A stretch of 64,000 bases of DNA from Macrostomum hystrix (Eukaryota; Animalia; Platyhelminthes). Below, piece after piece: positions 1,066 to 61,198 of the stretch. A model generated the notes under the pieces. That model saw only the letters and a list, made by a program, of their open reading frames with translations, was not told the origin of the DNA and searched no databases. The position numbers and the translations under genes are program-made. The stretch covers positions 15,810,001 to 15,874,000 of the forward strand of contig CATNEN010000038.1 of NCBI GenBank assembly GCA_950097015.1, written 5' to 3'. Positions within the stretch are counted from its first letter, which is position 1, and every line of letters starts with the position of its first letter.

Positions 1066-4000
1066 TCAGACTCTAACCCAGCTCTTTCCAACCGAATAGT
1101 AAATAGCGCCCAGTTTAGCGGGCTCAACCCCCAGCCTGTAGGCCAGCAGGATCAGCGCGTTGAGGCCGCAGACGGCCAGGAATCCGTGAGTAATCCAACG
1201 CCTAGGCGAAGTCATGACGGCGGCGTCGGCGATGGCCACGTGACCGAATAATTTTAATCGTTCGGAAAATTCGATATCTTCCAAGAATGGCCAATCGCGA
1301 TATCCGCCAGCCATTGTGTAATAATAGGCGTGCATGAAGAGGCCTTGGCTACCAATGGGCATCTCGTAGCGCCTGCAGCGCCAATTAGTGTGCAGCTCCA
1401 GCAGGAGGGTGCGCAGGGCCCATGGTATGTCTTTAGTGAAGCACAATTCGTTGGGCAGTTTCAGGTGAAAGGTGAACGCGCCGGCCACAATGCCCGGCTT
1501 GCTTAGTGCGTGCACTAATATTTCGTCCCAGTTCTCTGGCAACGAGCTGTCAGCGTGCAGGGCCAGGTAATAGGCGCCACGAGCGTACCGCACGCCGTAG
1601 CGAATCATGTAGCCTCGCCCAGTTGGCAGGGAGTCCGGCAGGCGACGTATTTCGATGCTAACTCGGCGCAGCTGCGACGGCGGCAGGAAGGTGCCCGCCC
1701 GGTGACGAATGAAGTCGCGAACCACCTGAACAGAAAAGATTGATTAGAGAGATAAAAAATTGTATTTAATAAATAAACCTACTTAGTCAGTTTCTGGAGT
1801 GCTCAGAAATTTTCTGATGTGCTCAGTGAGTTTCTGGTGTGCTTAGTGAGTAGCTGGTGTGCTCAGTGAGTTTCTGGTGTGCTTAGTGAGTAGCTGGTGT
1901 GCTCAGTGAGTTTCTGGTGTGCTTAGTGAGTAGCTGGTGTGCTCAGTGAGTTTCTGGTGTGCTTAGTGAGTAGCTGGTGTGCTCAGTGAGTTTCTGGTGT
2001 GCTTAGTGAGTAGCTGGTGTGCTCAGTGAGTTTCTGGTGTGCTTAGTGAGTAGCTGGTGTGCTCAGTGAGTTTCTGGTGTGCTTAGTGAGTAGCTGGTGT
2101 GCTCAGTGAGTTTCTGGTGTGCTTAGTGAGTAGCTGGTGTGCTCAGTGAGTTTCTGGTGTGCTTAGTGAGTAGCTGGTGTGCTCAGTGAGTTTCTGGTGT
2201 GCTTAGTGAGTAGCTGGTGTGCTCAGTGAGTTTCTGGTGTGCTTAGTGAGTAGCTGGTGTGCTCAGTGAGTTTCTGGTGTGCTCAGTGAGTTGCTAATGT
2301 GCTCAGTGAGTTGCTGGTGTGCTCGGTGAGTTTCAAATGTGCTCAGTGAGTTTCAAATGTGCTCAGTGGGTTTCTGGTGTGCTCAGTGAGTTTCTGGTGT
2401 GCTCAGTGAGTTGCTAATGTGCTCAGAGAGTTGCTGGTGTGCTCAGTGAGTTGCTGGTTTGCTCAGTGAGCTGCTGGTGTGCTCAGTGAGTTTCTGGTGT
2501 GCTCAGTGAGTTTCTAATGTGCTCAGTGAGTTTCTGGTGTGCTCAGTGAGTTTCTAATGTGCTCAGTGAGTTTCTGGTGTGCTCAGTGAGTTTCTAATGT
2601 GCTCAGTGAGTTTCAAATGTGCTCAGTGGGTTTTTGGTGTGCTCAGTGGGTTTCTGGTGTGCTCAGTGAGTTTCTAATGTGCTCAGTGAGTTTCAAATGT
2701 GCTCAGTGGGTTTTTGGTGTGCTCAGTGGGTTTCTGGTGTGCTCAGTGAGTTTTAAATGTGCTCAGTGAGTTTCAAATGTGCTCAGTGGGTTTCTGGTGT
2801 GCTCAGTGAGTTTCTGGTGTGCTTAGTGAGTAGCTGGTGTGCTCAGTGAGTTTCTGGTGTGCTTAGTGAGTAGCTGGTGTGCTCAGTGAGTTTCTGGTGT
2901 GCTTAGTGAGTAGCTGGTGTGCTCAGTGAGTTTCTGGTGTGCTCGGTGAGTTTCAAATGTGCTCAGTGAGTTTCAAATGTGCTCAGTGGGTTGCTAATGT
3001 GCTCAGTGAGTTTCAAATGTGCTCAGTGGGTTTCTGGTGTGCTCAGTGAGTTTCTGGTGTGCTCAGTGAGTTGCTAATGTGCTCAGAGAGTTGCTGGTGT
3101 GCTCAGTGAGTTGCTGGTTTGCTCAGTGAGCTGCTGGTGTGCTCAGTGAGTTTCTGGTGTGCTCAGTGAGTTTCTAATGTGCTCAGTGAGTTTCTGGTGT
3201 GCTCAGTGAGTTTCTAATGTGCTCAGTGAGTTTCAAATGTGCTCAGTGGGTTTTTGGTGTGCTCAGTGGGTTTCTGGTGTGCTCAGTGAGTTTCTTGTGT
3301 GCTCAGTGAGTTTATAATGTGCTCAGTGGGTTTCTGGTGTGCTCAGTGAGTTTCTGGTGTGCTCAGTGAGTTTCAAATGTGCTCAGTGAGTTGCTAATGT
3401 GCTCAGTGAGTAGCTGGTGTGCTCAGTGAGTAGCTGGTGTGCTCAGTGAGTTTCTGGTGTGCTCAGTGAGTTTCAAATGTGCTCAGTGAGTTGCTAATGT
3501 GCTCAGTGAGTAGCTGGTGTGCTCAGTGAGTTGCTAGTGCGCCCAGTGATTTTCTTGTGTGCTCAGTGAGTTGCTAATGTGCTCAGTGAGTAGCTGGTGC
3601 GTCCAGTGAGTAGCTGGTGTGCTCAGTGAGTAGCTGGTGTGCTCAGTGAGTAGCTGGTGTGCTCAGTGAGTAGCTGGTGTGCTCAGTGAGTTGTAAATAC
3701 GCTCAGTGAGTTTCTGGTGTGCTCAGTAAGTAGCTGGTTAGCTGGTGTGCTCAGTGAGTAGCTGGTGTGCTCAGTGAGTTTCTGGTGTGCTCAGTGAGTT
3801 GCTGGTGTGCTCAGTGAGTAGCTGGTGTGCTCAGTGAGTTGCTGGTGTGCTCAGTGAGTTGCTGGTGTGCTCAGTGAGTTGCTGGTGTGCTCAGTGAGTT
3901 GGTGTGCCCAGTGAGTTGCTGGTGTGCTCAGTGAGTTGCTAGTGCGCCCAGTGATTTTCTGGTGTGCTCAGTGAGTTTCTAATGTGCTCAGTGAGTTTCA

Positions 4001-7000
4001 AATGTGCTCAGTGAGTTGCTGGTGTGCTCAGTGAGTTGCTGGTGTGCTCAGTGAGTTGCTAATGTGCTCAGTGAGTTGCTACGCATTTCCACACTGCTAA
4101 ATTATGAAGAAGACCCACAAAATGCAATCAGTTAATCATAGTTCAAAGTCCAAGCTGTTCTTTAGCTGTTGCATTGGACTGTAGCAGTGGGTGAGACAAC
4201 AAGCAAAACAAAAATCAAAACATTTACTATCTTGCCAACACTCGTCTGCAAACTTAGACTTCTTCTTGGCATGATAAAAATGACAGATAGAAGTCCAAGC
4301 TGCAATTCAATCAATGTGAATTCTCAATTGAGACAAACCTCAGCTGTGCCGTCCACAGAGCGGCCATCAACAACGACAATCTGTAGCGGCCTCTTTTTCG
4401 AACAATTGAATAGCAAATTTCGTAGAGTGGTCTCAATGTGATCGGCCTCGTTCCGAGCCGGTATGAGAACAGTCACTTTTTCGCTCATAAACAGACTGCT
4501 TGGAATGCCCAGCTCACTCTCCATCAGGTCGAGATCCTCAATGGTGTCGACGTCACGTAGGATCGGTCGCATTGTGGCGCAAAGTATGCCCAATCGGAGT
4601 GCATTGGCAAACTGTAGTGCGTAGGCGGAATTTAATATCAGATTTGCTTTGATACCGGGGGTTAACAACCTTTGGCATGCAAAGCTTGTAAACTGGGCCA
4701 CCATAGCTACTCTCAACACGTACTGCTGGTCATCTCTCCTGTGTCTCATCTATACTGCGTCTCCTCTCTCCTTTGTCTCACCTCTCCTGCGTCTCATCCC
4801 TCCTGTGTCTAATCTCTCCTGCGTCTCATCCCTCCTGTGTCTAATCTCTCCTGCGTCTCATCCCTCTTGCGTCTCATCCCTCCTGCATCTCATCTCTCTT
4901 GCGTCTCATCCCTCCTGCATCTCATCTCTCTTGCGTCTCCTCTCTCCTTCGTCCTATTTCTCCTGCGTCCCATCTCTGCTGCGTCTCATCTCTCCTGCGT
5001 CTTCTCTCCCGTGTCTAATCTCTCCCGTGTCTAATCTCTCCCGTGTCTAATCTCTCCCGTGTCTAATCTCTCCCTTGTCTCATCTCTTACTTGTGTCATC
5101 TTCCCCCGCGTCGCATCTCCCCCGCGTCACATCTATCCGGTGTCTTATCGCTCCCTTGATGTCTTATCCCTTCGCCATTCGTTATCTTTGCATTATTTTA
5201 TCAATCCGGGTCTAGTTTTACTCGTCTCTTATCTTTCTAATGTCCAATATCTCCAGTGTCCTATCTATTGACCTGCTATCGCAGTTTTTAACTACTTCAT
5301 TGTCCCACGAGGTATATATATATTAACAATATATAAACTATGCAGATATTTTAATAATCAAAACTAGTTTGACGAAATTCACCCTGAAAGTCGTCCCAGA
5401 CGGACAGGAAGTGTTAAATGTCTTTTTTCAGAAAAAACATAAGCTTGACACAGACCAGTAAGTGGACAAGCATGAGGTCATCCCCGTTCAGTACAAAGTT
5501 CCAAGTCCGAACCTAAATCAGTCAGTCTAGTGTTTCACAGCTAGTACTCGTAGTTGTCACAGATCGCCCCAGCGACCTAGCATTCTTATCTCTGAGCTGC
5601 TTTTTTGGCGTTGTTTTGATTTTTTCAGTTTTAAACTAATTTAATCACAGACACAGACAAGTTTTTATTTTTAACGCTATCAGCACGATAAAAAATGTCG
5701 CAAGACTCTGGTAGACAAACAGGCTGAGCGGCAGTGCGGTTTTCAAAACGCGATGCATCTCGCACCAAGATTCATGAGCTTAAATCAGCGACCTACGCTT
5801 CAGGGCCTTAGCTGAACCCACTCCCTACGCTTCAGGGCCTCAGCTATTCTCACCAATACGCTTCAGGGCCTCAGCTATTCTCACCAATACGCTTCAGGGC
5901 CTCAGCTATTCTCACCAATACGCTTCAGGGCCTCAGCTGTTCCCACCCCCTACGCTTCAGGGCCTCAGCTGTTCCCACCCCCTACGCTTCAGGGCCTCAG
6001 CTATTCTAACCAATACGCTTCAGGGCCTCAGCTGTACCAGCGCATTCTATACATTCACTAAAGGAGACAATTATCTTTTGACTTCAAACGGTATAAATAT
6101 ATGGCAAATATTTGGCACGCAAGACACATGTGCAAAGCTAATATGTCACGCGCGTACAACGTGCTTTGGTAAAAGTCTTATGAGTTTCATTATTTCACTT
6201 TGCACTACAAGGTTTCGGAATGTGAAAACTCATATTACTAACCTGACAGTCAAATACTGTGCTAGAGCCCCAGAGGATGTTGCGAAACAGGCTGCTAAGG
6301 TGTCGCCTAACTGACTGTCGCTCGGCGCCTAGTAGATAGAGACCACCGCTACCAGTCTTGCCAAGGACAAGGCCGATACCAGAGTCCAGGCAGCGAAGCG
6401 CTTGCAGAGCGTGCCGATCTGACAATGCGGGAACATCTGAGCTGAGCAGAACAACCTGCGGGTTGAGGTTAGAATGGCTTGCTCTGGTTGATCTAGGGTT
6501 AAAGGATGTCGATTCTGAGGATCTAAGATCAAGGATGTCGACTATGGGGATCTGGGATCAAAGGATGTCGATTTTAGGAACTTTGGATCAAAGGAAATTG
6601 ATTCTATGGATCTGGGATCAAAATATTAGATGCTAGGGATTTAGGATCAAAAGAGGTCGATTTTGAGAATCTGGGATCAAAGGATGTCGATTCTAGGAAT
6701 TGGGGATCAAAGGATGTCGATTCTAGGAATTGGGGATCAAAGGACATTGTTTCTATGGATCTGGGATCAAAGAATGTCGATTTTGAGGATCTAGGATCCA
6801 TGGATGTCAATTCTATGGATCTGGGATCAAAGGATGTCAATTCTTGGGATTTGAAAACAAAGGATGTCAACTCTAGATATTGGGGATCAAAGGAGGTCAG
6901 TTTTGAGGATCTGGGATCAAAGGATGCCGATTCTGAAGTTCTAATATGGGGATTTTTTGAAAATTAATTTTAAAAGATAAAGGACGCAATTTTAGAGAAG

Positions 7001-8315
7001 AAATCCTGACGTTAAGTAGATTCTGTATTGATGTATTGATCTGGCCTGTATTGATACACGCTCTTATGGCGACGGCATTTGATTCTTAGGATCCGTGATG
7101 AAAATCACAACTCAAGAATCACAACTCAAGCATTAGAGAACAACAGACCTGAGAGTAGCCCCTGCCGAACAGGCTCCACAAGGCGGATTCCAGCGTCGCG
7201 CCGATGGTGCTACCCGACTGTGGCAGCGGTGTGGCGGCGCCTGCTACGCCGGCAGCCTTGGAGGAGATCAAAGAGAAGCCGCCGCCATTTTTTCCCGAGC
7301 TCTGGCGCCGTCTCTGGGGACCCAGATGGGCGATTCGGCACGGCGCGACATTGGAGTCTGAGGCGGGTGACAGTGATTTGAGAGAGAATTAATCTAATAA
7401 TAATAATTGAACAGGGACTCTAGCACATATTTTCGTGATCATGCTACTGGCACAGGTGTGTACATTCTCATTGCGCCTTAAGTAGAGGTGAAAGGATTGG
7501 CATGATGTCAATCAATGATCAAGATCTTCCAAATGCAACTCCAATTTTTTTTTTGAAGTCTCACCAAACTTCGAAGCGTAGGGAGGCTGCTCAAAGGATT
7601 TGAGCTGGTCCAAGTAGCGTTGAAATTCTCCGAATTCAAGTGCGTCATTCACGCAGAAGTTGTCTTCATTCTCGCCCGGATTAACATCGGCTCCATTCCA
7701 AATGTAATCATCCGCCTCTTCGAGTCCCTGATGACGAAGCCCGTCGTCTAGATAGGCGTCCAAGTCTTCTCTGGCGTTACCGTTTGCGTAACCACCGCCG
7801 CGTACAATGGACACTTTGGCCTTAGAAAACTCGGCGTGCCTATCAACGCATTCCATCCACAGGTGTACTGGACGATTGCAGGCGCTGGACTCGCATACTA
7901 CGTGGCACTGGTCCTTGTAGGCAATGAAGATATCCGTATCTGGTAGGTTCCGACGCAGTGGCTGCAGACGGCGCACTAGATTCTCAGTGAGTACACGCAT
8001 AACCATAGCGGCATTGTTTGGCCCAGTGTAGGGCATGAGGCGGGATTTGGTTTTGCCAGGATTTGGCAGTCTGGTGAAAACAACAACAGCTCGCCGAGTG
8101 GGCTTCGACAGGCGCACCAGACTAGACGCTGTGCTAACAACTGGAATTAGAAACTGCATAGTTACTAACCAGACAAATAACTTTATCGGCCAATTAAAAC
8201 ACTGCTTTGCTAGTCTAGCGACAATACGAACAGTTTCCATGGCAACCAGCCACAACAAAAGCAGATAGGTTCGCAGCATGCTGCGCTTTCGCCTTAGCAT
8301 GGAGCCGTGGAGCAT
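1066..8315 (-). CDS. Spliced gene, about 701 aa: DUF2064/TIGR04282-like transferase fused to TIGR04283-like family-2 glycosyltransferase (arsenosugar-pathway-associated families)
   Basis: Exons on minus: 8315-7565, 7357-7149, 6455-6243, 4611-4339, 1725-1066. All introns GT-AG, phases 1,0,0,0, total 2106 nt open. N-domain motifs: VVVFTRLPNPGKTKSRL, PQSGSTIGATL..LFGRGYSQ|VVLLSSDVP, LVLGKTGSGGLYLLG, LFRNILWGSSTV, LRDVDTIEDL. C-domain motifs: VLIPARNEA, VVDGRSVDGT, GRG..YYLALHADS, VAGAF, NWR..PIGSQGLF, GGY..PFLEDIEFSERL, TSPRRW. Confidence 0.88.
1790..4080. repeat. 20-bp minisatellite (GCTCAGTGAGTTTCTGGTGT), with a 40-bp dimer block at its start; intron 4 of the GT gene
   Basis: About 115 tandem copies. 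Confidence 0.97.
4725..5150. repeat. Degenerate CT-rich 17-19-bp tandem repeat (CCTGCGTCTCATCTCT)
   Basis: Tandem degenerate copies. Confidence 0.8.
5790..6035. repeat. 31-bp minisatellite (TACGCTTCAGGGCCTCAGCT...)
   Basis: About 8 tandem copies. Confidence 0.9.
6490..6940. repeat. 30-bp degenerate minisatellite (GATCTGGGATCAAAGGATGTCGATT...)
   Basis: About 15 copies. Confidence 0.88.
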
Positions 8316-9304
8316 TTTATTTTCTCTTTGTATATGAAACACTTGACACTGACACCTTGCGATGATGTGTCTGGAAAAAAAATTGTAAGTAAAACATGCA
8401 ATGCAAGAAGCTAATTTAGTAAAAAAAGTAAAAAGTACTATTATTTTTACATTTTCTATCAGATGTAGATAAACTAAATGTGAAATGTTAAAGGCTTGCT
8501 CATTACTGTTACTTAAATATTACTAAATATTGTTTACAGTAGCTAGCTAAAGACTACTAAAAGAAATATGAAATTCTTTTTTTTCAGAATGATTATTAAC
8601 TCTGATGATGTTTTAATAAACAAATTGAAAAGCAAATAAATAGGCCACAAAACATAGGTGTATACATAGTGTGTGTGTGTGTGCCTTCTCTGTAAAAATT
8701 GCATCAGTGTCAACAAGCAGGGCCAGAGATCCACTGCTTCACTAACTTGACTTGCTTACATATCACATCCCATTCTGCCCATTCTTAGTTATGGACTCAA
8801 GGGTTCTATGATTGCAGAAAACCCCTTAGTCACTATTTAAAGGATCAAAAAGTTTACCCTTCTGGAGAATATGGAGCAGCCCATGCCTTCATTTGACATG
8901 CTAGTAACAACATGAAGATTGCCAAGCTGACCCAGTGAACCTGCCTGCTACTTTTGGCATTGGTTAGCTGCACCCAAGACTGACCCAACTTATCTTTTAC
9001 ATTGGCGGTTGAGATAGGGTCCTTTTAGCATATTTGTGACATTATATATACTCCCTGTCAGTAGAAGCTATAATGTATAAACTACAACAGGCCTCTAAGC
9101 TTACTTTATAGAATTGTAGCTACTGATAATCAATATAGACATGCTTTATTGATTACAGCTTTGGCATTTTGATGTGAGTCTATATAGGCCCCTAAAAGTT
9201 TTTATAAATGTAAGCTATATACATATACATTTAGCTATCCATTATATTGACATATAATAAGCAAAATTATAATAGAGTTTCAACTTAAAAAATCACAACT
9301 TAAA

Positions 9305-29400: not shown

Positions 29401-32400
29401 TGTGGATAAATATATCAAGGGTTCAAGTCAAGTAAATAGCTATACTTAAGTTCAGCGTCCCTTGCTTTAAAAAAAGCATAATGCTACAATTAAAACTATC
29501 CAGGTGTCCGCCGATCTTCGTCTCTGCCCCGACGGCTTCAAGGGCTCCCTTCGGCTGCTGGAACGACCCGTACTGAGCTCAGAGGTGCGGCTGTTAAGCA
29601 AATCAAGCGGCGCCAATGATAGTGCTGCCTACGCGTGGATTGCCGAGGAGGTGACAACGGCGGTCAGCCAGGCTGTGACGGAGATCTTCTTGACGGACGG
29701 CGAACGCAGCGGCAGCCCCCACCAGCCGGCAAGTCGATCATCAGCCGTCAGCGGCTGCTTCGAGTTCGGCCCGTCGTCGGGAACCGCTACCGCAGCCGTC
29801 AGCAAGCGTGACACGGCCAGCCAGACAGCATCCCTGCCGCCGTTGCCTTCGTCGGCGGCCGCGGCAGCGGCGGTCGCTGCTGCAGCCACCGCTTCTGCGG
29901 CTATTGTGGCTTCGTCTCCGGTGGCCAAAGTGGACGCAATAGCTAACGAAGCCAAAGTGGTGAGTTTAGCAATTCAATTTCGGAATGATAGAACTTGCGA
30001 ACTAAAGTTCTTGCGAACTAAAGTTCTTGCGAACTAAAGTTCTTATCGATTTTAACTAATCGATTTTAAGGTTTGAAAAACATCTTACCACCTGTTATAC
30101 AACTTTATTAGTCAAGTTATTATGTCTGCGACTGTTACCAGTTGTCCAATTACCAGTTGCCACCATAAACTTCTTGTGCATTTTTAACTCTTTAGGCACT
30201 CTTTAGAAATTTAGTTGTTCGCAACTGTTGGCTGAATGCGAAACACACAGGAGTAGTAAATTTCTGCATGTGCCAAGTTAAAATTCATCTGTCCGTTTGG
30301 CTTTTTTATTCTACGAGCCGTACAACTGTTAGTATTGGTTTTAAATATCAAAGTTCTGCTACTATTGGTTACGAATCGTAATATGTTTTGGCATGCATTT
30401 TTGCATCTGACGTCTATTCAAATTCATTTATGTTTTTTTCTAAAGAAAATGCGAGCTATTTTTATTTAAGACGCAATTCCGTAGATTTATTGATCTTAAG
30501 TTCGTTTAGTAGAATAGGGATATCCGTCAAAAAAGGATTTTCATCGAAAAGGGATTTTCGTTGAATTGGGATTCTCGTCGATTTAGAAATTTCGTCCAAA
30601 AGAATATTTTCGTCAAATAGGGATATTCGTGGAATAGGGATTTTCGTCCGATAGGGATTTTTGCTGAATAGGGATATTTGTCGAATCGGAGTTCTCGTCG
30701 ATGTGTGATTTTCGTCGAATAGGGATTTTTGTCGAAAGGGATTTTCGTTGAATAGGGATTTTCATCCAAAAGGGGATTTTCATCGAAAAGGGATTTTTTT
30801 CAAATAGTAATTTTATGAAATTAAGATTTTTATCCAATCAGGATGTTTTCATAAATTTATTTCCGTATGATGAGGATATCGTATTGTTGTGGTTTGGGAT
30901 AATCTGCGATTTTTTATCCGTCCGTGAAGGCTTTGCCGCAATTCCTACTGAGCCCACTGAACTTCTGTCCACAGACTCCCAGCTACGCCCCTGCAGCTGC
31001 TGCGGCTGCTTCTGCCTCTGTCGCCGTCAAGGAAGTCAGCAACAATCGGTCCAGAGCCGCCCAGTCAAATGAGACGCCTCAGTCGCAGCCCGTCTGCCTG
31101 CTGGTGAAGCTGATCAAGGCCACCGGCTTGAAGCCGTGCGTCGGCAGCAGCGGCAGGCCGCTGAATCCATTCGCCTGCGTAGAAATGGACGAACCAAACC
31201 AGCGTCACGTGACGGGCAGCGTGTACGGCACCTCCAATCCCTACTGGGATCAGCACTTCATGCTGTGAGTCGCCGGCTGAAAAAGTGGTGCTTTGGTTAG
31301 CGTAGTGGTTACATACATCGCTCACCAAAGTCCCTAATTGGTGTATTTTAGTCTTTTAGTCCAGCGGTTAGAGCTTCGGACTTCAGACCGAGAGGGCAGG
31401 AGTTCGAATTTCAACCCGTGGGGAAAAATTGTCCCTGTTGGGACGCAGGTTAGTTTAAGATCCCGTTGATAATAGCATCAGTAAATATGACTCTTATATG
31501 GACACAGATACTTGACAGGCGTTGTAAACGCTTTGTCAAGTACATTTTTTACTACTAACAGGTGTAGTGACGCTCTGTCTAGTACTTTTGTTGCTACTAA
31601 CAGGTGTAGTGACGCTCTGTCTAGTACTTTTGTTGCTACTAACAGGTGTAGTGAGGCTCTGTGATACTGTAAGGAGCTGCTGTGATGCAGTAGTCCCCAG
31701 TACAGGCGTTAAGCTTTAATTACTACCTAGAAAGATACTTACCAAGGCTAGACTTCAGACCGGGGCCGATTGCAATAGCTCGCTTGAAGATGTAACTATA
31801 CTTATCAGGGTGCCATAAATAACAGCCAGAAAAGGGGGGAAGGCAGACAGAGGGAGAGAGAGTAGCACGCACGTATGGCTCAGCCACTCAGGGCAGAGCT
31901 GAACAAAAAGGGAGATGGGGAGGGGCAGACAGTCAGAGGGCGAGAGAGAGGGTGAGCTGATCCAGCCGAGACAGAATCAGATTCCGCCATCTCGAGTCGA
32001 ATTCCCAACCACAACATTCTAATCCCCACGCCAGAGACCTGTCGAAGCGTTCCAACCGGTTGTCTCTGCACGTGTTCGATCGCAATGGTCAGGCCGACAC
32101 ATTGCTCGGCTCGGCCAGCCTCCTATTGGCCGACCTGCCCTCACAAGGAGCCCGGGTCATTCAGCCGCTCCGAATGCCGCGTCGCGACTCTGCCTCGACG
32201 GCCAGCATCGCTGCACCGCCGCCAACCCTGACTGCCGAGTTTCTGTTCATGTCGGCGTCGAGCGCTGCAGCCGTCGTCACTGCCACTCCACAGCCAAGCG
32301 GCCACTTTTCCGGTCCGCGTGCGCCCAGCGCGTCGAGTGTGTTAGCGGAGTCGGCTGTCACAGTGGTGCAGGTGTCGCCAGCTAGCGCTCACCACAGCTC

Positions 32401-35400
32401 CGGCGTTGGCTCGTCGCCAAAATCTGACGAGAGCGCTGGCGGTGGTGGCTTCGCTGATGGTGCTACTGGCAAGAAGGCAATATCGGAGGAAGTGCTGGAG
32501 CAGCGGCAGCAACCAGTCGATGGAACCAGTGAGTTGTTGTCCAGCATGTCAGAAAATGATGACACAGCTCGCATTCCACACAGGAGGTACTTAAAACGTC
32601 ATCACCATACTTTATCTCAAACTAAAGATAAAGAACTAGAACTAGAACTAGAGCTAGAGTTCTTGCGAACTAGAGTTCTTGCGAACTAGAATTCTTGCGA
32701 ACTAGAGTTCTTGCGAACTAGAGTTCTTGTGAACTAGAATTCTTGCGAACTAGAATTCTTGCGAACTAGAGTTCTTGCGAACTAGAGTTCTTGCGAACTA
32801 GAATTCTTGCGAACTAGAATTCTTGCGAACTAGAGTTCTTGCGAACTAGAGTTCTTGCGAACTAGAGTTCTTGCTAACTAGAATTCTTGCGAACTAGAGT
32901 TCTTGCGAACTAGAGTTCTTGCGAACTAGAGTTCTTGCGAACTAGAGTTCTTGCGAACTAGAGTTCTTGCGAACTAGAGTTCTTGCGAACTAGAGTTCTT
33001 GCGAACTAGAGTTCTTGCGAACTAGAGTTCTTGCGAACTAGAGTTCTTGCGAACTAGAGTTCTTGCGAACTAGAGTTCCTGCGAACTAGAGTTCTTGCGA
33101 GGGATGCGAATTTCGAGACAAGTGTCCCATTTTGCTGTTGCTGATTCATCTTGTTCATGATTTTTATGGTGGTTATGATTACTGTAGCTGGCCTGAGGGT
33201 CGTGAACTCGACATCGAAATTGCATGCGAAGCCATTGACAATGCGCCCCAGGCATTCGCAGGCAGGCTTCGTTGCAACAAAAATCTGTTCACTTTAGCGA
33301 GCCGATGCTCAACTCGACCCTTGAACAGCAGCAGCAGCAGCAAAAGCAGCAGCAGCAACAGGGGGAGCTAAACGAGGAAACAAACACAGGTGACCGCGAG
33401 CCCGAGATGGCGACGGGCAGCGCAGAAAAGTTGGCATGGAGACAATCGCTGAGGCGATTCTTTAACAGATCTTGTAGGTTGTCAAACAGAAGCTAAGCCA
33501 GTCTAATCTGTCTACTTATATATAGTAGTACTATCAGTGCATACTTTTTTTCCTTCGTACATTTTTAATTCCTCGAAGCTAACTTTTTGCCAATCAGAAG
33601 CTCACTTTTTGCATCGTTTGCATTGGAAGTCTTGCTTGCTTTTTTGGTAATCGGAGAAGTTGTTGAAAAGGCTATAATCAATTTAGATGCCAATGGAGTA
33701 AATTTCACTGTCTGAACTAATGTCGAATTACATAAACGTTTGTATGAATTTTCATCTTATTGAACAAAAAATTACCTTTGCTTCTTGTGGTAATTGGTTG
33801 CTAGTTAAAAATTACTTTACATTTCTGTTGCCTAGATAAGTCCTAGGAGATAGGGAGTCTTACCTGTTCGACGGAGAGTCTCACCTGTTCGATAGAGAGG
33901 CCATCTGTTCATTAAGATGTGTCACCTGTTCAGCAGGGTGTCTCGCCTGTTCGATACGGAGCCCCACCTATTAGACAGGGAGTTTCGCATGCTCGATAGG
34001 GTGTCTCACCTGTTCGATCGGGTGTCTCACCTGTTAGATAGGGTGTCTCACTTGTTAGATAGGGTGTCTCACCTGTTAGATAGGGTGTCTCACCTGTTAG
34101 ATAGGGTGTCTCACCTGTTAGATAGGGTGTCTCACCTGCTAGATGGGGTGTCTCACCTGCTCGATCGGGTGTCTCACCTGCTAGATAGGGTGTCTAACCT
34201 GTTAGATCGGGTGTCTCATCTGCTAGATAGGGTGTCTCACCTGTTTGATCGGGTGTCTCACCTGCTAGATAGAGTTTCTCACCTGTTAGATAGGGAGTCA
34301 GAGGAATAATCAGAAAGTCTTACTTGTTTGACAGGTAATCTCACCTGTTCCTTAGCTTATAACAGCGAACCTTGCCTACCAAACCGAACAGACTCCTCCC
34401 TGTCGCGCACAGTTGACGAGTTCATGAAGTCTACTGATGTGTCCTATCAGCCCATGAGCTCAACAGATAGTGCGGCTAGTCAGCCAGTGACGCCTGCAGG
34501 TGAAGCTCAGCAGCAGCCACCGCCAGTGCCCCAGCATAGTGCCTATTTAACTGCTGATACGAACGGTAAGCAATGGCAAAAAAATTTTGTTTCAAGTAAA
34601 ATATTTCCTAGATTTAAATAACTTACACATACATGTTACAATACTGTGCGAAATTCATAATTATATAACTTATTTCAAGTTTGAATGTAATTTAATTATC
34701 GTTAATGCTTTATGATTTTTGTTTCAGTAGAATTTGTCAGTTTCTAATTATAACTCAAGTGAGCTTTAAGTAAGGTAATCGAGAAATTATATATTATGAT
34801 TATTTTATTAGCTTGTGACTGTGTGCACTGACATGCAGACAGCCAGGAGGCAATTCTGCCTATTTTACTGAATTCTCAGTGTTGTGTGTGAGGCAGCGTG
34901 GCCAAATGAAGAACGGAGCACTGGGTTAGAAGGTTGGAAAAAACGCGAGCCCTCCAAAGGCCTGTGCGCACTACTATATATTTTAGCCAGTCAGAGTAAA
35001 CAACAACCCCCGTCCCGGCCTAGACCGGTTCGGATGGACCGACCCCCCCAGCCAATCAAAACGCGCCACGCGCACTCTAAGGCGGCATGCAAGCCGCATA
35101 CACAACACTCAGCACAATACACAAGGAGTGTACATTTGCCCTGCATGGTCAGGCAGTGTACACTGTCAATGTACTTTAGAGCGTAAATTGAAAATTTACC
35201 CTTCTATCCCTGGATCTTTCGAAATTCGCTTGGTCGACGAGAGCGTCAGTTGTTGCTATTTTTAGAATCGCGTGAGTTTCAATCAGTCACGTTACTGGCC
35301 TCAGACAAGGAAAAAATAGCAATCAAATACCGTATATTTAGTTTGTTTGAGTTTTATATTTTCACTTAATGTAATGCACTCGCTGTATGTCACCATAGCA

Positions 35401-38400
35401 ACCAGTTTTCCACTCTGAAATTTTCTGCTCATCCGCATTAAACAAAGCCCCAGAGCCGCTCTATGTGACGGTTGAGACGCTGGTTGTGCCCAACTGGCCA
35501 GCAGCTAAAAAGCGGGTCGCTGATGACGTAAGAATTCTGATAAGATAGGCCGCAGAATGAGTTAATAGCATGGCATGCTAGTTGTGACAGTTATTTATCG
35601 CAGTCGATCTTTTTCTATATCTAGCCCACATGTCTTATTCATCTCTTTACACTGCCATCTTTATATCAACTGCAAAGTGTGGATTGCTAATCTATTGCTG
35701 CGATTATGAGCACGATCCTAACAACACTATGGCTATGGTTTCATCTGCGATTCTGGCTACGATTCTCGCTACGATTCCGCTTAGAACAACAGCAAGCTCA
35801 TACTAGGGTTTTCTCTGGATATAGTTTTATCGACGATTTTGGCTACGATTCTTGGCTCGATTCCTTCTACGATTCCTTCTACGATTCCTGCTACGATTCC
35901 TGCTACGATTCCGTCAACGATTCCTGCAACGATTTCTGCTTCGATTCCTGCTACGATTCCTGCTACGATTCCTGCAACGATTCTTGCTACGATTTCTGCT
36001 ATGATTCCTGCTACGATTCCTGCTACGATTCCTGCTACGATTCCTGCTACGATTCCTGCAACGATTCCTGCTACGATTTCTGCTATGATTCCTGCTACGA
36101 TTCATTACTTCTACGATTCCTTCTACTATTCCTGCTGTGATTCCTGCTACGATTCCGTCAACGATTCCTGCAACGATTTCTGCTTTGATTCCTGCTACGA
36201 TTCCTTCTACGATTCCTGCTACGATTTCTGCTACGATTCCTGCTACGATTCCGTCTACGATTCCGTCTACGAACCTGCTACGATTCCTGCTACCGTTCCT
36301 TCAGATCCTTCGACTTTTATAACCAGAAACGATTACAATGCTCGCTAGATAAGCAATCCACTTGCGTCCAGAATGGCAAGCAAATCTATTTTTCTATTTC
36401 TTTAATCTCCCTAAAATTTCTCGGAAAGTTTTGCTTGGTTTTGGAATAGTGATTCAGGTGTCATCTATGCTATAGCCAGACATGCATAATCTGTGAAGAT
36501 CTTCGGTTTATTTATTACTCTGGCATGACCGGGTCCTTGACGACACATTTTCGGATAATATGCTTTTTCGTTTTTTGCCTGCCCATTAATAGTGGAGATT
36601 TGCAAGCATATTGATATGCTGGTATTGTTAGCAAGGAATTAAACAAAGTTTATTTATCTTTAATTATTATTATTCCATGATGAATTTTATGAAGATCTTT
36701 GTTTAAAGAATATTTTAAGAGAGTTTCATTAAGCTCTTTTATGCAACATCTGGGCAACCCAGAGGACGCCTCAGATCCACCTGCTGCTCCCTACTCAATG
36801 ACTTCAGCGACGTCAACCAGCGATCATCCACAGACACCGTTGGACTACACACAGAGTCTACCTGTGCTGAATGTGGTGCGAAGCCTAATTAGTGTTTTAG
36901 AGAATAAAAAGCTTGTCTCCCTGGGTATTTAGGCCACGATTTACTACTTGATTGAAAAATTCCATTCCATTTAAGCTTTCTAAGAATATGCTGAATTTAA
37001 ATTCTGAATTTACAACACAATATGCTGAATTTACAAACGCCAAAACATCGTGAATTTAAAGTAGCTTAAATTCTATTCCTATTTGTAATTTTTGCCATGG
37101 TGTAAATTAAAAAGAATTGAAATCAAAATAAATCATTCATTCGATTTCAAATTTGTGATTAAACTTCTAATTTAATGAATAAAGCTTTTTTAAACAGTTC
37201 TTATCGTAATGATAATTTAATACAGCAAAAACTTATTTCGTTTATAATCACATTTAAATACAACCCACTTTTATATATTGCGGTTTTCGGGTCATTTAAT
37301 TTAGCGCTTGTGTCGCAGTTTTATTTTATTGAGGTGATTTTATATAATTGTTTGCCGGATTTGTTTGAACAATGCTCTGTATTAATCACATGATACCCAT
37401 TAACTGCAGCAGCTTGGCTACACCAGACTAAGTCCCTTGATAGCCTGAATCCTATGGTGAGAGCTAGAAGATCATAAAACAACTTGAAGTGAAAACTCCT
37501 TGACTTACCTACTGTCATTGTTGTCTTCTAGTCAGTAAGAAAGATTTTTTTCAATCGCTGTAGTCCTTGTCGTAAGTAAATCCTAAGAATTGTCAACTAT
37601 TTCGCTCGTTCTTAGAAAATTTCATGTTGTCTTGACTCAACTGTAAAGTGAAAGTCTGATAGTTCTAGTTATTAAGTTTTTGTATCATAGATGACGCAGC
37701 ACGCAGCTTTGGCGTGATAAGTAAAAGACCTTCAATATTTGATTGGCTAGAGAGGGTAGACTTGTGGCTATTTTTAGAATAATCTTTTTAAGGGATATCC
37801 CTTCTTCAAACCGTAGCTAACAGCCCACAAGCACGTGACCGACTGCACAGAAAGTTAATTTTTCACGAAGTTCGAGTGCTGTCCTCTTTATTATCTCTGT
37901 CTTGTATTTAGGTTTTTTACCGATTTCAGATTTATCCCAAAACTGTCTTTTTACGGTTAAAATTATATATTTGTTTAATTGATTCGGCTATAGAAAGCTC
38001 TTTGCCTTATTAAAAAAGGCATTTTGATGGTCACTTTGCTTAGTGTATTGTGCGTGATGTACTCGTGCTGTGACAAACTAAATGGTATTGTCAAAAATGC
38101 ATAGATCGGCTATTCGGTTCACATTTTATGCTGTTACGCAATTATTTTTCAGATTCCTGGCGAGGACGATGGACGAGGTACTACAAAATCGAAAGGTGAC
38201 AGGGATGGCAGCATTATTAATTAATTAAATAATACTTGAAGGATGGCTGTGGGCAATGGCACATAGGTGACAGTAGACCCGAAGCCAGCTAGAAGGTAAT
38301 TCTGCCCATTTCGCTGACTCCTGAGCACACAGATACTCTACGTTAGCCACACTCTCACACAGGTGTGTAGACGTGGCCTGACTTTCTCATCGTCAGCTAG

Positions 38401-40060
38401 TTACACTATGGTACACTATCAATGGGCCATAGAGGCTGGCTATCAAAGGTGTAAATGGAAGGACAAACCTCGAAGCATCATTTCCGCGGCTGCTGACCAA
38501 ATAAATGTGGCCTCGCCACAACAATGACCCCAGGCCAACTCCAATGCTTCGAGCAACTGTTTTTAGGCAACAAGAAGGCATCCAGATCCGGCAGCTTTGC
38601 CAGTAGATTTCGCCGAGTCTTTCTCGGCCCAGACCGGAAGTCGACCGGGAGACAGCAGCAGCAGCAGCAGCAGCCGCCGCCGCCTCATCGCTCGCCGAGC
38701 ATAGACCAGGTGTTTTCAGATGAAGGCTATTACACTACTGGCCAGAGGCCTAGCACTAGTCGCGCCTACTCAATCGAACCAGCGTATAGCGAGCTGACGC
38801 CGTCACTGCAGCAACAGCAGCAGCAGCAGCAGCTGCCACCGCATGTCGGCGCTTCCGCCGATGAGTTCGGCAACGGGCAGCGCAGAAACCGCAGCCTAAG
38901 CAGCAGTTTGCGGCGACTGTTCACAGGCGGCAGAAAGAAGAAGATCAGACAGCGAGCTGAGTCAGGTGAGGCCATAGACTTTGAGCTGCTTTTCTAGCTA
39001 CCATCTTCACCCACATCTCACTCTCTGTCTGTCTGACTATCTCAGTCTCTCTGCATTTTTCTGTGTCGTCGTTAATTTCAATGATAATCTCATTGGTCTT
39101 CTACAAGTCCTTCACAAATCGGGTACTTCATATGTGAAAGCAGAATTTCACATCGCTACTAAATCTTATTTTTTCATTAGGACCAGTGCCTGTTCCTGTC
39201 CTGAAAACGACAAGTCCGCTTAGATCGCAGAGGCCAGCAGGTACTTACTGAGGAAACCAATTGAAGGCAAAACGCATTCAATGTCTATTATAGGCGTTTG
39301 AAAGCATGGATATTGTTGTTATATAAGTATCCTTTGCATGAACCACATTACGTCATGACATACTATGCCATAATACGAACCTACGAAGCTTTTTAGCAGA
39401 TTTCGTCAAGCGTTCGAGTCACTGCATGGCTGCCAACCTCCCTAGCCAATTAAACCTAGCTCGTTGCTACAATCCTATGTTCAATTGAACTGACCTTAAC
39501 TCTATCCAATCTTCTTAACCAATCAGAATTATCGTAAATATTAATTGCGTTCAGCCTTCCTAGCCAATCAAATTTAACTAATCTGGCTGGCCAATTAGCT
39601 GCATCTATCCTTCCTGGTCAATAAAACGCATTTAACATCCCTAACCGATTGAATGCGTCCAACTTTCCCGGCCAATCAAATGCGTCAACTATCCTGGCCA
39701 AGAAAATGTGACCAAACCTCCTCTGGCTAATTAAGTTCGTCCGTCCTTTACGGCCAATAAAATGCGTTCAAACTCCCTGGCCAATTAAATGTGTTCCATC
39801 TCGCCAGCCAATCAAATGCGTCCAAACAAAGAATCAGCTTCCCTATTTCAAATGACATAGGTTGCTTGGTCTTGTGTCTTTTCTAACGCTGCCCAAGCGA
39901 TATATATCATGCCATCTTTGAATCGCCCACAGAGACCCGGGGTCTGTCAGGTCAGCCAGGTTCGTCCTACGACACAGCCGGCGGACAGTCTACCTCGTCA
40001 ACGGTGCCGAAGTCGTCCGGAGGTCGAGCTGGCGGCTGGAACAGCGAAGAAATTCTTTGA
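17480..40060 (+). CDS. C2CD2/C2CD2L (TMEM24)-like TM-SMP-C2 lipid-transfer protein, about 1034 aa, 12 exons
   Basis: Exons 17480-17992, 27807-27896, 28353-28451, 29504-29959, 30975-31264, 32035-32586, 33262-33473, 34356-34565, 36763-36875, 38153-38195, 38567-38965, 39933-40060. GT-AG with consistent phases, 3105 nt. N-terminal TM (LLFVGWCLFGILATIIVNFIY), SMP-type start ESCLWLNTLVAWLF, C2 domain (LLVKLIKATGL..NPFACVEMDEP..TSNPYWDQHF..LHVFDR..LLGSA), low-complexity basic tail. Exons 9, 10 and 12 are less certain. Confidence 0.8.
18062..22165. repeat. 27-29-bp purine-rich minisatellite (GATGGGTGAGAGTCAGATGGAGGAGAA); intron 1 of the C2CD2-like gene
   Basis: About 4.1 kb of tandem variant units. 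Confidence 0.97.
22985..24965. repeat. 30/31-bp minisatellite (TCTGACACCCTGACCCCGATTCTTCTAGCA)
   Basis: About 65 copies of two unit types arranged in blocks. Confidence 0.97.
25728..27437. repeat. 33-bp minisatellite (GAGGACCACATACCTAATGAGAGATGAGTGATT)
   Basis: About 52 copies. Confidence 0.97.
27945..28025 (+). mobile_element. tRNA-like SINE head
   Basis: gagagcggtctaacgcattcacctctcgc...gagctcgattccgcggcggggccac resembles the head at 63095-63165. Confidence 0.5.
28030..28348. repeat. Degenerate repeat of about 42 bp (ACAAATTTGTGTCCACGGACC core)
   Basis: About 8 copies, running into the exon 3 acceptor. Confidence 0.8.
28800..29212. repeat. Degenerate repeat of about 30 bp (GTGGCGGCACATCAAAAGAAT)
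   Basis: About 13 copies. Confidence 0.85.
30510..30850. repeat. Degenerate repeat of about 17 bp (GGGATTTTCGTCGAATA)
   Basis: Tandem degenerate copies. Confidence 0.8.
31355..31480 (+). mobile_element. tRNA-derived SINE fragment
   Basis: A-box TAGTCCAGCGGTTAG and B-box-like AGTTCGAATTT; no acceptor stem. Confidence 0.45.
32633..33100. repeat. 16-bp minisatellite (GAACTAGAGTTCTTGC)
   Basis: About 28 copies; three related copies also at 29990-30045. Confidence 0.95.
33850..34350. repeat. 21-bp minisatellite (GATAGGGTGTCTCACCTGTTA)
   Basis: About 20 copies. Confidence 0.92.
35840..36300. repeat. 12-bp minisatellite (CTACGATTCCTG)
   Basis: About 38 copies. Confidence 0.93.
39440..39830 (+). 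repeat. Degenerate CCAAT-containing tandem repeat
   Basis: About 12 copies of a GGCCAATCAAATGCG-like core in the last C2CD2-like intron. Confidence 0.6.
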
Positions 40061-40329
40061 GACTGCTATAGCACCGCTTTGCCACTGAAGTAGAAGACTT
40101 TGCAGGTTCAACAGTGCCTTGTGACACCTGTGAAAATATAAATTTATTTTGCTGAGCAAATTCTTCCTCTTGTAATATGCACACCATTTTAGCTCGAATT
40201 TGTTGCACAGTTATATCTCCACCGATGCTTTTGAAATGTCTGTACTTGCAGAAAATTTTGTCTGACTACTTCCATACCCTGACCCAACATCAGGCCCTTG
40301 AAACCGATAACAAACATCAGGCAATTCAT

Positions 40330-40650
40330 GATCCCACACCAGGCCATCACCCCGCATCAGACCATGACACCACATCAGGCCACGACCCCACATCAGGCCA
40401 TGACCCACACGAGGCCATGACCCACACCAGGCCATGACCCACACCAGGCCATGACCCACACCAGGCCATGACCCACACCAGGCCATGACCCACACCAGGC
40501 CATGACCCACACCAGGCCATGACCCACACCAGGCCATGACCCACACCAGGCCATGACCCACACCAGGCCATGACCCACACCAGGCCATGACCCACACCAG
40601 GCCATGACCCACACCAGGCCATGACCCGCATCAGCCCATGACCCCACATG
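40330..40650. repeat. 17-bp minisatellite (CAGGCCATGACCCACAC)
   Basis: About 18 copies. Confidence 0.93.
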
Positions 40651-41529
40651 CGTGTGGAGCTTATTGCTCCATTTCATTCATTCCAATCCATTTATAGCGT
40701 ATAGCTCGATGCAAATTCTCTGTTTTACGGCTTATTAAGCTAAGCGTGCAATATTTAGATGCAATTCGCGCATGCAATTTCATTGCCTCTCCTAAGGTTG
40801 AAGCAGAAATTTTTTCGACTATTCAATAATTTAGGAGAGTTGAGTTTTATGCCTACTAAAATTTATTGTATCGCCCATTTCCGTTGCTCAGTGTTAAAGC
40901 TATTGCGGCCTCGCTGCGGAATCGAACTCATGACCACGCCAACGCTACCCCCAAGCGTTGCCAGCAGTTTCAAGTTAATTGTTATATGAAAATTTCCAAT
41001 AATAATGAAATCTTAAAATATCTATCTATGAATTTTGATTCTGCTTTAGATAATCGTTAAGCACTACTTGCCGCCTTCAGGTGAGTAGTTATTCCGGATA
41101 GTTTTCGCTGAAATCGATCACTCAGTGACGCCACTCGCGTTAAGGCTAAATTTTCTATATTTTGATGCACTTTCGATTAATAGCTTTTTTCACAGCCTTC
41201 CAGTGTCGAGTATTCTCTGTCATTGTGGTACCATTTTCGATTGTCATTTGATATAATTAATTAAGCAGTCAGTCACGTGCTGTTTTTTACAAAATTATAT
41301 TAGCGCGCTTTATATTATGAAACATAACTTTCGTAGTGTTTCAATATTTGTTTTTGTATTTAGCTTATGGTCGTACAAAGTATACAACATTTAATTATTC
41401 TATATTATTAACACAACTTTTATTAATTTTTGGAGCCTAAAATTCTATCAAAAAGTATCCTACTTTGGAAAAATTAAAATGAGAGTAAAATGAGAGATTT
41501 AAGTTACTACTGTAATTCAGAATTGCATG

Positions 41530-41910
41530 TCATTCAGGATTAACTATTATTTAGGATTATCTGTAATTTAGGATTACCTGTAATTCAGGATTACCTGTAA
41601 TTCAGGATTACCTGTAATTTAGGATTACCTGTAATTCAGGATTACCTGTAATTCAGGATTACCTGAAATCCAGGATTACCTGTAATTCAGGATTACCTGT
41701 AATTCAGGATTACCTGAAATCCAGGATTACCTGTAATTCAGGATTACCTATAATTTAGGATTACCTGTAATTCAGGATTACCTGTAATTCAGGATTACCT
41801 GTAATTTAGGATTACCTGTAATCCAGGATTACCTGTAATTCAGGATTACCTGTAATTCAGGATTACCTATAATTTAGGATTACCTGTAATTCGGGATTAC
41901 CAGTAATTTA
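41530..41910. repeat. 17-bp minisatellite (CAGGATTACCTGTAATT)
   Basis: About 21 copies. Confidence 0.93.
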
Positions 41911-42164
41911 TCAGCAATATTTCTGCTCTATTTCTGATTTTGCAGTAAATTGTTCTGCTTTACCATTCACTGTGCTCGATTAGACAAATTGCATACGTAA
42001 TTGAATGTTCAAGCTAAATACACACTGTTACAAGTCGGAAACTCGTCATTTAGGTTTTAAACTTGACTGTTCAACTAAAGATTTTAAACTCGTTTACTCA
42101 CATGTTCAGTGGACATAAAATAAAGCATTTTGAAGCACTGGTTACATCAGGTCTCATTCCGTCA

Positions 42165-42646
42165 CATCCACCATCCTTCAAGATCATCTCGACCACCATC
42201 CTTCAGGATTATCCAGTCCACCATCAGGATGATCTCGTCCTCCATCCTTCAGCATCATCACGTCCACCATCCTTCAGGATGATCCCATCCACTATCCTTT
42301 AAGATCATTTCGTTTCGTCCACCATCCTTCAGGATGATCCCATCCACTATCCTTTAAGATCATTTCGTTTCGTCCACTATCCTTCAGGATGATCCCATCC
42401 ACTATCCTATAAGATCATTTCGTTTCGTCCACTATCCTTCAGGATGATCCCATCCACTATCCTTTAAGATCATTTCGTTTCGTCCACCATCCTTCAGGAT
42501 GATCTCGTCCACCATCCTTCAGGATGATCTCGTCCACAATCCTTCAGGATCATCACGTCCACCATCCTTCAGCATCATCACGTCCACCATCCTTCAGGAT
42601 CATCATGTCCACCATCCTTCAGGATCATCATGTCCACCATCCTTCA
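42165..42646. repeat. About 25-bp repeat (CCACCATCCTTCAGGATCATC...)
   Basis: Tandem copies ending at the 42659 acceptor. Confidence 0.88.
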
Positions 42647-42671
42647 TTGCAAATTTCAGTTTCGGCTGCTC

Positions 42672-54470: not shown

Positions 54471-54774
54471 TGTCGTTTGTGACAATAATTTCAAAGTTAG
54501 GTTAGTTGAAGTAGAAAGCTGTAGTTGATCGTTATTAACAGAGTTTATTTGTAGATTATTAAACGGTTGAACGGATCGTGAGAGCATAGCGCATTTGTCT
54601 CTTGAATATAATTTAGGGGTTTTGAACCTAGACATTACTGTACTGGGCTAAAGAAAGCATTCTAGAATATTCTAGAATGGTGTTGCTATTTTTAGAAGCG
54701 TGCGCATCAACTGGCGAAGGAAAGATAGGCTAACGATAAGGGCGGTTTTATGGAGGTTCAGTCTGAACCCGACA
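54471..54774 (-). repeat. 3' LTR of the Bel/Pao element (304 bp)
   Basis: Direct repeat of 60895-61198 with TG...CA termini. Confidence 0.95.
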
Positions 54775-60894: not shown

Positions 60895-61198
60895 TGTCGT
60901 TTGTGACAATAATTTCAAAGTTAGGTTAGTTGAAGTAGAAAGCTGTAGTTGATCGTTATTAACAGAGTTTATTTGTAGATTATTAAACGGTTGAACGGAT
61001 CGTGAGAGCATAGCGCATTTGTCTCTTGAATATAATTTAGGGGTTTTGAACCTAGACATTACTGTACTGGGCTAAAGAAAGCATTCTAGAATATTCTAGA
61101 ATGGTGTTGCTATTTTTAGAAGCGTGCGCATCAACTGGGGAAGGAAAGATAGGCTAACGATAAGGGCGGTTTTATGGAGGTTCAGTCTGAACCCGACA
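60895..61198 (-). repeat. 5' LTR of the Bel/Pao element (304 bp)
   Basis: Direct repeat of 54471-54774, followed on the minus strand by the PBS. Confidence 0.95.

Follow-up and report, generated by a model that had tools for sequence, protein, structure and literature searches.

The relatives of the gene reported here include bacterial proteins in which two transferase families, TIGR04282 (DUF2064) and TIGR04283, are fused in one chain of about 450 aa. These proteins, annotated as 'rSAM/selenodomain-associated transferase 1/2', occur in Desulfobacterota, cyanobacteria and Planctomycetota, and NCBI gives both families the name 'arsenosugar biosynthesis glycosyltransferase'. The radical-SAM enzyme ArsS, with which the families are associated in bacteria, has been characterised according to papers cited in PMC12159101. 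The names of the two transferase families rest on gene neighbourhood, and our literature searches on DUF2064, TIGR04282/3, arsenosugar glycosyltransferase and DUF3641 returned no functional study of either family. To our knowledge, the steps of arsenosugar synthesis that follow ArsS are biochemically unassigned. In marine animals, arsenosugars, arsenolipids and arsenobetaine are usually credited to algae and microbes. Here we describe a gene of the flatworm Macrostomum hystrix that carries both transferase families in a single reading frame. It lies on the minus strand, at positions 8315 to 1066 of a 64,000-nucleotide stretch (positions 15,810,001 to 15,874,000 of contig CATNEN010000038.1, assembly GCA_950097015.1), which as a whole is called the window below. 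It is a genuine, transcribed, five-exon nuclear gene present at a single locus.

The encoded 701-aa protein opens with a pair of hydrophobic helices. These are followed by a DUF2064/TIGR04282 domain, which folds like the CofC/MobA nucleotidyltransferases, a short linker, and a glycosyltransferase family 2 (GT2) domain of the GT-A fold and TIGR04283 type. The two domains follow each other in the same order, and with the same conserved motifs, as in the bacterial fused proteins, which are 40-43% identical to the animal members. The bacterial proteins differ in that they begin right at the first motif, with no N-terminal anchor, and their genes have no introns. Sequences of the animal kind are already public as uncharacterized proteins, and the bacterial families have been named. 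What is new is a verified gene model in this genome, the recognition of both ArsS-linked transferases as one fused gene across animal phyla, and the description of the Macrostomum form, a variant that diverges by its insert and the loss of two aspartates and that has no partner genes. With some reserve, we favour the reading that the protein is a membrane-tethered two-step transferase that would act independently of ArsS in the flatworm, with organoarsenic ribosides from the diet or a non-arsenic analogue as its substrate. This reading draws on analogy with enzymes of similar fold.

A transcribed five-exon gene with two transferase domains

The original prediction, made from the letters of the window alone, proposed five exons that splice in frame into about 701 aa. 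The exon coordinates sum to 2103 nt, which is exactly 701 codons, and the frame is open throughout. Exon 1 (8315-7565; all features of the gene are on the minus strand) begins with the ATG at 8315 and encodes the two hydrophobic helices (residues 17-36 and 44-62; 8130-8267), the N-terminal part of the DUF2064 domain with the motif FTRLPNPGKTKSRL (8037-8078), and the start of an insert; its donor at 7565, TTTG/GTGAGA, is seen in transcript contigs. Exon 2 (7357-7149) holds the end of the insert, followed by the DUF2064 motif PQSGSTIGATLESAL (7179-7223). The core of the DUF2064 domain is encoded by exon 3 (6455-6243), with VVLLSSDVP (6429-6455), GSGGLYLLG (6327-6353) and ILWGSSTV. Exon 4 (4611-4339) carries the end of this domain (LRDVDTIEDL, 4531-4560), the linker and the start of the GT2 domain (IPARNEA, 4444-4464; VVDGRSVDGT, 4345-4374). 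The remainder of the GT2 domain lies in exon 5 (1725-1069, with the stop codon TGA at 1068-1066), including LHADS (1546-1560), PIGSQ (1345-1359), FLED (1276-1287) and TSPRRW (1195-1212). Every motif of the two series listed in the prediction is present. The codon GAC is divided between exons 1 and 2, and the sole open frame of exon 2 begins at 7355. The accompanying statement that exon 2 has no minus-strand open reading frame (ORF) depends on the threshold: at 40 aa, an internal ORF starting with TTG (7119-7271) overlaps part of the exon. The 5′ untranslated region spans 8316-8371 in the transcript contigs, and a probable 3′ untranslated region spans 881-1065, its end being estimated solely from the length of these contigs.

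The transcript contigs are 2365-2386 nt long and come from three public runs of one study (X2, X3 and X4), one contig from each. Aligned to window positions 4100-8400, all three match 8371-7565, 7357-7149, 6455-6243 and 4611-4339 with zero mismatches. Junctions 1 to 3 are thus directly visible in spliced form; the joint of intron 2 appears in the contigs with the cut set 2 positions further right. Past the aligned stretch, the contigs extend for 847 nt more, a length consistent with exon 5 followed by some 185 nt of 3′ untranslated region. They seem to reach 4337 because GT is common to the start of intron 4 and to exon 5. We infer the fourth of the predicted junctions (4339 to 1725) from this continuation, from its splice signals (donor GAG/GTTTGT, acceptor TTCAG/G, phase 0/0) and from collinearity with the protein of Macrostomum lignano. 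A fourth run, from a different study, contributes a 242-nt fragment of exon 1. The type of these public runs is unrecorded. We take them as RNA because their contigs cover one third of the sampled words, which equals the exonic share, and because the 220-Mb assembly contains no intronless copy of the gene.

At their 5′ ends the contigs part from the genome at an AG (8372-8371) behind a T-rich tract, and each continues with 23 further non-genomic letters. Position 8371 is therefore probably a spliced-leader acceptor. If the leader ended in AUG, a short upstream frame would arise, with its stop codon TAA at 8319-8317, just ahead of the ATG of the gene. A donor of exon 1 near 7900, where the TIGR04282 match ends, was considered and rejected: there is no in-phase GT there, and the true donor is at 7565. 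The stretch upstream of 7565 is not an intron, since it is coding insert according to both the transcript contigs and the M. lignano protein.

Family searches were made exon by exon, and the natural 714-aa orthologue of M. lignano (P0001) served as the full-length proxy. Among the NCBIfam models, TIGR04282 is matched by exon 1 (34.2 bits, profile positions 1-58) and exon 3 (39.1 bits, 99-161), and TIGR04283 is the sole match of exon 5 (122.5 bits, E = 1.8e-35, 57-221). Exon 2 alone matches no NCBIfam model. Exon 4, which contains a generic GT2 N-terminus, scores 23.8 bits with TIGR04283 versus 34 bits with HpnB; such a slight preference of a short exon for HpnB is usual for the generic N-terminus of GT2 enzymes. 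The full-length orthologue has TIGR04283 (E = 4e-43) and TIGR04282 as its two best NCBIfam families. In Pfam, it matches Glycos_transf_2 as well as DUF2064 (PF09837), the latter with 41.9 bits, over the cut-off of 25.8; the ORF of exon 3 alone reaches 19.3 bits. The proposed fusion of the two families is therefore borne out by the best matches of exons 1, 3 and 5 and of the orthologue. Both domains are found at a single locus in the 220-Mb assembly of 42 contigs. The only other TIGR04283 match in this genome (contig C30, 664130-664456; E = 1e-7, profile positions 2-98, open frame of 238 aa) is probably an ordinary GT2 enzyme, for example a dolichyl-phosphate glycosyltransferase.

The DUF2064 domain is interrupted by a lineage-specific insert of about 170 aa, which evolves fast and with indels. 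The TIGR04282 and DUF2064 scores are lowered because this insert splits the domain. In the AlphaFold model of the M. lignano orthologue, the insert (residues 137-303) is disordered, with a predicted local distance difference test score (pLDDT) of about 30. Both domain cores are modelled with pLDDT above 90, and two helices are present at the N-terminus, which are predicted to form a membrane anchor.

Comparison with known structures supports the assignment of both folds. The N domain has both sequence and fold in common with 3CGX, a DUF2064 protein of Desulfovibrio from structural genomics: the M. lignano model matches it in Foldseek with E = 4e-12 and a template modelling (TM) score of 0.76 by target, and the family profile matches it with E = 9.7e-49. 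The similarity to CofC-type guanylyltransferases is remote, with weak matches of the family profile to 7P97, 2I5E and 6BWG (E = 0.02-0.5); the CofC model TIGR03552 also matches animal orthologues. Unlike 3CGX and the CofC group, the N domain of the window gene has the large insert and reads SGGLY at the DGGYY motif. We equate the Asp of SSDVP and the D-x-D of DVDT with the three metal-binding Asp residues of FbiD. The C domain has a GT-A core like that of family-2 enzymes including K4CP (2Z87), PcManGT (6YV7), DPMS (5MLZ), GpgS, SpsA and WrtF, and the Foldseek matches of the M. lignano model include 6P61 (TM 0.82), WrtF, SpsA and PcManGT. Its NE, DG.S.D, HAD (of DxD type), G-loop and xED motifs stand in the order of the GT-A common core. 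Identity to these enzymes is only 12-19%, and the Asp of the G-loop is Ser in Macrostomum.

Relatives in bacteria and animals

In bacteria, the co-occurrence with ArsS that the original prediction cited is confirmed. At 18 of 50 loci, the fused transferase gene directly follows an ArsS gene of the same orientation. Elsewhere in the genome it was found in 20 of 31 further bacterial genomes, which brings the genomes with ArsS to 38 of the 49 checked. The 11 genomes in which ArsS is missing are all metagenome-assembled genomes (MAGs), and some of them are the nearest neighbours of ArsS-bearing genomes; the absence may come from incompleteness. The arsenic link of the bacterial fused transferases is thus real at the level of gene context. 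In one MAG, ArsS (340 bits) and TIGR04282 (210 bits) are joined to profile positions 1-119 of TIGR04283 in a 742-aa open frame (L060, 1294-3522, plus strand), a 'Rosetta stone' fusion of the radical-SAM enzyme and both transferases. The matching locus has later stops, and the end of the frame may be shifted in the MAG. Four MAGs of Desulfobacterota type have an ArsS match with one in-frame TGA each, which fits the selenocysteine forms of ArsS alluded to in the family name. An Atlas search with ArsS returned bacterial clusters only.

In the databases, exon 5 has its best match in a hypothetical M. lignano protein of 714 aa, 88% identical over residues 496-714, and exon 2 is 75% identical to residues 264-333 of the orthologue. 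Three M. lignano proteins of 714 aa (BOX15_Mlig000337g1, BOX15_Mlig000337g2 and BOX15_Mlig008274g1; PAA49238.1, PAA51690.1 and PAA81193.1), annotated as hypothetical or as 'Glycosyltransferase 2-like domain-containing', are orthologues with which all five exons are collinear. They have the insert, both Asp-to-Ser changes and the start MLHGSMLRRKRSML in common with the window gene. They differ by indels in the insert, and M. lignano has several copies as opposed to one locus here. Identity to the M. lignano orthologue is 61, 75, 87, 78 and 88% for exons 1 to 5. The catalytic exons are far better conserved between the two Macrostomum species than the insert, which argues for continued selection.

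Beyond Macrostomum, named eukaryotic relatives come from sponges (Amphimedon, Sycon), cephalochordates, echinoderms, hemichordates, molluscs, a brachiopod, nemerteans, an annelid and a priapulid. Together, the animal orthologues cover ten phyla. No vertebrate, insect or nematode is among the named relatives in the best 120 matches or among the exon 5 matches that were looked up. One outcome that would have told against the prediction was an orthologue already characterised with a different function; all of the orthologues are labelled 'uncharacterized', and we found no published function for animal DUF2064-GT2 proteins. These proteins, of about 490-550 aa, have their domain order in common with the window gene and belong to the same clade; examples are LOC118415510 of Branchiostoma floridae, LOC110451009 of Mizuhopecten, LOC121410582 of Lytechinus, LOC100636312 of Amphimedon, LOC135814017 of Sycon and LOC106817586 of Priapulus. 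Several of the sampled animal members have an N-terminal hydrophobic segment, which is absent from the bacterial proteins. Unlike the Macrostomum proteins, the other animal orthologues keep both invariant aspartates and have no 170-aa insert. Their TIGR04283 scores range from 177 to 221.5 bits, and five of six pass the cut-off of 182. Of the seven proteins scanned, five are over the NCBIfam cut-offs of both families, with the amphioxus, annelid, bivalve and sea urchin orthologues among them, and Priapulus, with 177 bits, is 5 short for TIGR04283.

In phylogenetic trees, the eukaryotic proteins lie on one side of a branch that separates them from the bacterial fused proteins, with a support of 99 in a tree of 73 rows and 100 in a tree of 33 rows, both unrooted. 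Within the eukaryotic clade, Ambulacraria are well supported (99) and spiralians cluster more weakly (86). The M. lignano orthologue falls inside the clade formed by the animals and Diplonema, on a long branch whose exact place is unsure. Since the eukaryotic proteins form one clade that extends from sponges to amphioxus, the gene has long been resident in animal genomes. The original wording, 'ancient or horizontally acquired', is thereby narrowed in favour of long residence, and because the tree is unrooted no donor can be named. Bacteria that carry the fused gene without ArsS were considered as the source of the animal clade and not adopted, since all of them are MAGs, near kin of some of them bear ArsS, and the tree is unrooted. 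The fusion itself is not an animal invention, because many proteins of Desulfobacterota, cyanobacteria and other groups have their domains in this order. A transcriptome protein of Diplonema ambulator (EukProt) and a marine metagenome protein of 540 aa (ENA) fall inside the animal clade, where they pair with a support of 90-93. Either the eukaryotic clade is not strictly metazoan, or the Diplonema transcriptome holds prey or contaminant sequence.

Activity and partner genes

Residues of the window gene were checked in 99 columns that are conserved to at least 85% in 63 family members, and in the invariant columns of a 23-sequence alignment. The conserved motifs of the DUF2064 family are P.PG..K.RL, Q..G.LG, GSD.P, DGGYY, W.G and D.D...DL. 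The K/R loop, the Q and G, SSDVP, WG, DVDTIEDL, IPARNEA, DG.S.DGT, LHADS, FLED and TSPRRW are kept in the window gene. In the DUF2064 domain, DGGYY is changed to SGGLY (exon 3) and the GSD of the family reads SSD; in the GT2 domain, PYGDQ is changed to PIGSQ (exon 5). As a result, two family-invariant aspartates are serine in both Macrostomum species. The Asp of PYGDQ is kept in 170 of the 172 fetched members that match the motif, and among about 170 fetched members the sole departures at this Asp or at DGGYY are two M. lignano sequences. The order and roles of the GT-A common-core motifs have been described (PMC7185993). Judged by order and spacing, HAD would be the DxD, PYGDQ the G-loop, and LED the xED with the catalytic base. 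The two Macrostomum-specific changes suggest altered donor or substrate handling.

The flatworm genome was also searched for the arsenic enzymes that accompany the fused transferases in bacteria. In the whole assembly, ArsS has no match with its family model (TIGR04167/PF12345), nor, at E-values up to 1, with a cyanobacterial ArsS protein as the query. The positive control LipA, also a radical-SAM enzyme, was recovered in two exons with E = 3e-57 and 4e-51. For the arsenite methyltransferase ArsM/AS3MT, the model NF008823 gives a single weak match in the assembly, which is COQ5/UbiE (193 bits to UbiE), and the model of arsenosugar-type ArsM, NF038099, gives none. Palmgren et al. (PMC5398495) likewise report no AS3MT in flatworms. 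With neither ArsS nor ArsM/AS3MT, the known route from arsenite to arsenosugars is not encoded in this flatworm, and a self-contained arsenosugar pathway is excluded here. The part of the original prediction that saw in this gene an enzyme for making arsenosugars is therefore not supported, and the enzyme must act independently of these partners; remodelling, which the prediction also named, may still apply to dietary organoarsenicals.

The favoured two-step transferase would be tethered to the membrane by its N-terminal helices. Like CofC, FbiD and MobA, its N domain may activate a phosphorylated, sugar-like compound at the expense of a nucleoside triphosphate. An inverting transfer of the activated group to an acceptor would follow, made by the GT2 domain, in which DxD and xED are intact. 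The cargo of the bacterial proteins would probably be the 5-dimethylarsinoyl-ribose moiety of what ArsS produces. The flatworm protein could act on organoarsenic ribosides taken up with algal food, or on a non-arsenic analogue, for example one derived from 5-deoxy- or 5-methylthio-ribose. Several points weigh against this scheme. The M. lignano orthologue scores 147.4 bits with TIGR04283, versus a curated cut-off of 182, and 91.1 bits with TIGR04282, versus 134. The loss of two invariant aspartates could mean lost rather than altered activity, and the G-loop and xED would be placed by order and spacing, as opposed to residue-level superposition. In addition, the two steps are proposed by fold analogy, and the membrane topology is predicted. 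Finally, the absence of ArsS and ArsM was checked exon by exon in one assembly, which may miss a very divergent or unassembled gene.

A broader proposal would be that animals from sponges to amphioxus, including this flatworm, have a dedicated membrane-bound enzyme for 5-modified ribosides, which turns dimethylarsinoyl-adenosine from the diet or from symbionts into arsenosugars and arsenolipids. We regard this as tentative and rather unlikely. If a host enzyme for 5-modified ribosides did exist, some of the organoarsenic chemistry seen in marine invertebrates would be host-encoded and not purely algal or microbial, and there would be a first handle on the enzyme function of TIGR04282 and TIGR04283. 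The lack of ArsS and ArsM in the flatworm shows that the fused enzyme can be retained in the absence of the partners that accompany it in bacteria. Either dietary substrates sustain it or the name 'arsenosugar' is too narrow, and either outcome would correct or sharpen an annotation that is spreading to thousands of genomes. Macrostomum is a tractable animal, with RNA interference and transgenesis. A fused, intron-bearing and expressed gene that occurs in ten animal phyla offers a concrete target for knock-down.

Alternatively, the Macrostomum protein may be catalytically impaired or re-purposed, for instance with a scaffolding or binding role at the membrane, or with only one domain working. 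The serines at the invariant positions of DGGYY and PYGDQ, shared only with M. lignano among the members fetched, would be expected in such a protein, as would the disordered insert that divides the N domain and the scores under the curated cut-offs. The metal-binding and base motifs SSDVP, DVD, LHADS and FLED are intact, however, and the gene is expressed and correctly spliced. In addition, the domain exons are 78-88% identical between the two species, versus 61% with indels for the insert, a pattern suggestive of purifying selection on the catalytic regions. We therefore hold an impaired or re-purposed protein to be unlikely.

Still less likely is a synthesis of arsenosugars or arsenolipids by the animal, in which the bifunctional enzyme would provide the glycosyl transfer. 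Aquatic invertebrates hold much organoarsenic, and the named eukaryotic matches among the best 120 all come from aquatic invertebrates. The bacterial fused gene adjoins ArsS or is fused to it, most of the genomes checked contain ArsS, and both families bear the arsenosugar name. Against this stand the missing ArsS and ArsM/AS3MT in a genome where the LipA control worked, and the reported lack of AS3MT in flatworms. Moreover, the names derive from gene neighbourhood only, with no paper found that tests them, and the Macrostomum protein is divergent, under the cut-offs and short of two invariant aspartates. Bacterial contamination, recent horizontal transfer and a dead fragment are refuted, for contamination in agreement with the original prediction: although the relatives of both domains are mainly bacterial, at 33-45% identity, the locus lies 15.8 Mb into a 35-Mb contig with eukaryotic neighbours (a Pao-type retrotransposon and a C2-domain gene), four spliceosomal introns are removed in its transcripts, its relatives from ten animal phyla form one clade with well-supported Ambulacraria, and its frame is open over 701 codons.

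Introns, satellites and neighbouring genes

All four introns are on the minus strand and have GT..AG ends. They had been described as mostly satellite-filled, which holds for introns 2, 3 and 4. Intron 1 (7358-7564, 207 nt) contains no satellite, and its joint 7357/7565 is present in X2, X3 and X4. Intron 2 (6456-7148, 693 nt) carries a 30-bp satellite at 6490-6934. In intron 3 (4612-6242, 1631 nt), a 16-bp satellite occupies 4730-5154 and a 31-bp satellite 5794-6033. Intron 4 (1726-4338, 2613 nt), the one with the inferred junction, is largest and harbours 114 copies of a 20-bp satellite at 1785-4077. In each of the four runs, a great many short contigs match the 16-bp satellite of intron 3, with a summed depth of up to about 1e5 at 4964-5107; their joints vary, and two A>C differences (5033 and 5049) are frequent. 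This satellite family is therefore plentiful at other places in the genome, where it is possibly transcribed.

The ORFs within about 10 kb 3′ and 9 kb 5′ of the gene include no evidently related enzyme, as judged without a family search of these ORFs. Further along the window, a Pao/BEL-type long terminal repeat retrotransposon (54954-60806, minus strand) has an uninterrupted ORF of 1950 aa with Peptidase_A17, DUF1759, DUF5641 and integrase zinc domains. Arrays of a 30-bp satellite lie on both sides of this ORF (51960-54635 and 61096-61524) and read as PMRSQPSFKP repeats. The C2-domain gene (29504-43187, plus strand) is multi-exon, with the C2 domain at 30924-31265 and long stretches rich in Gln, Ala and Ser. 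Its introns are likewise packed with tandem repeats, and satellite-filled introns seem to be a general trait of this genome.

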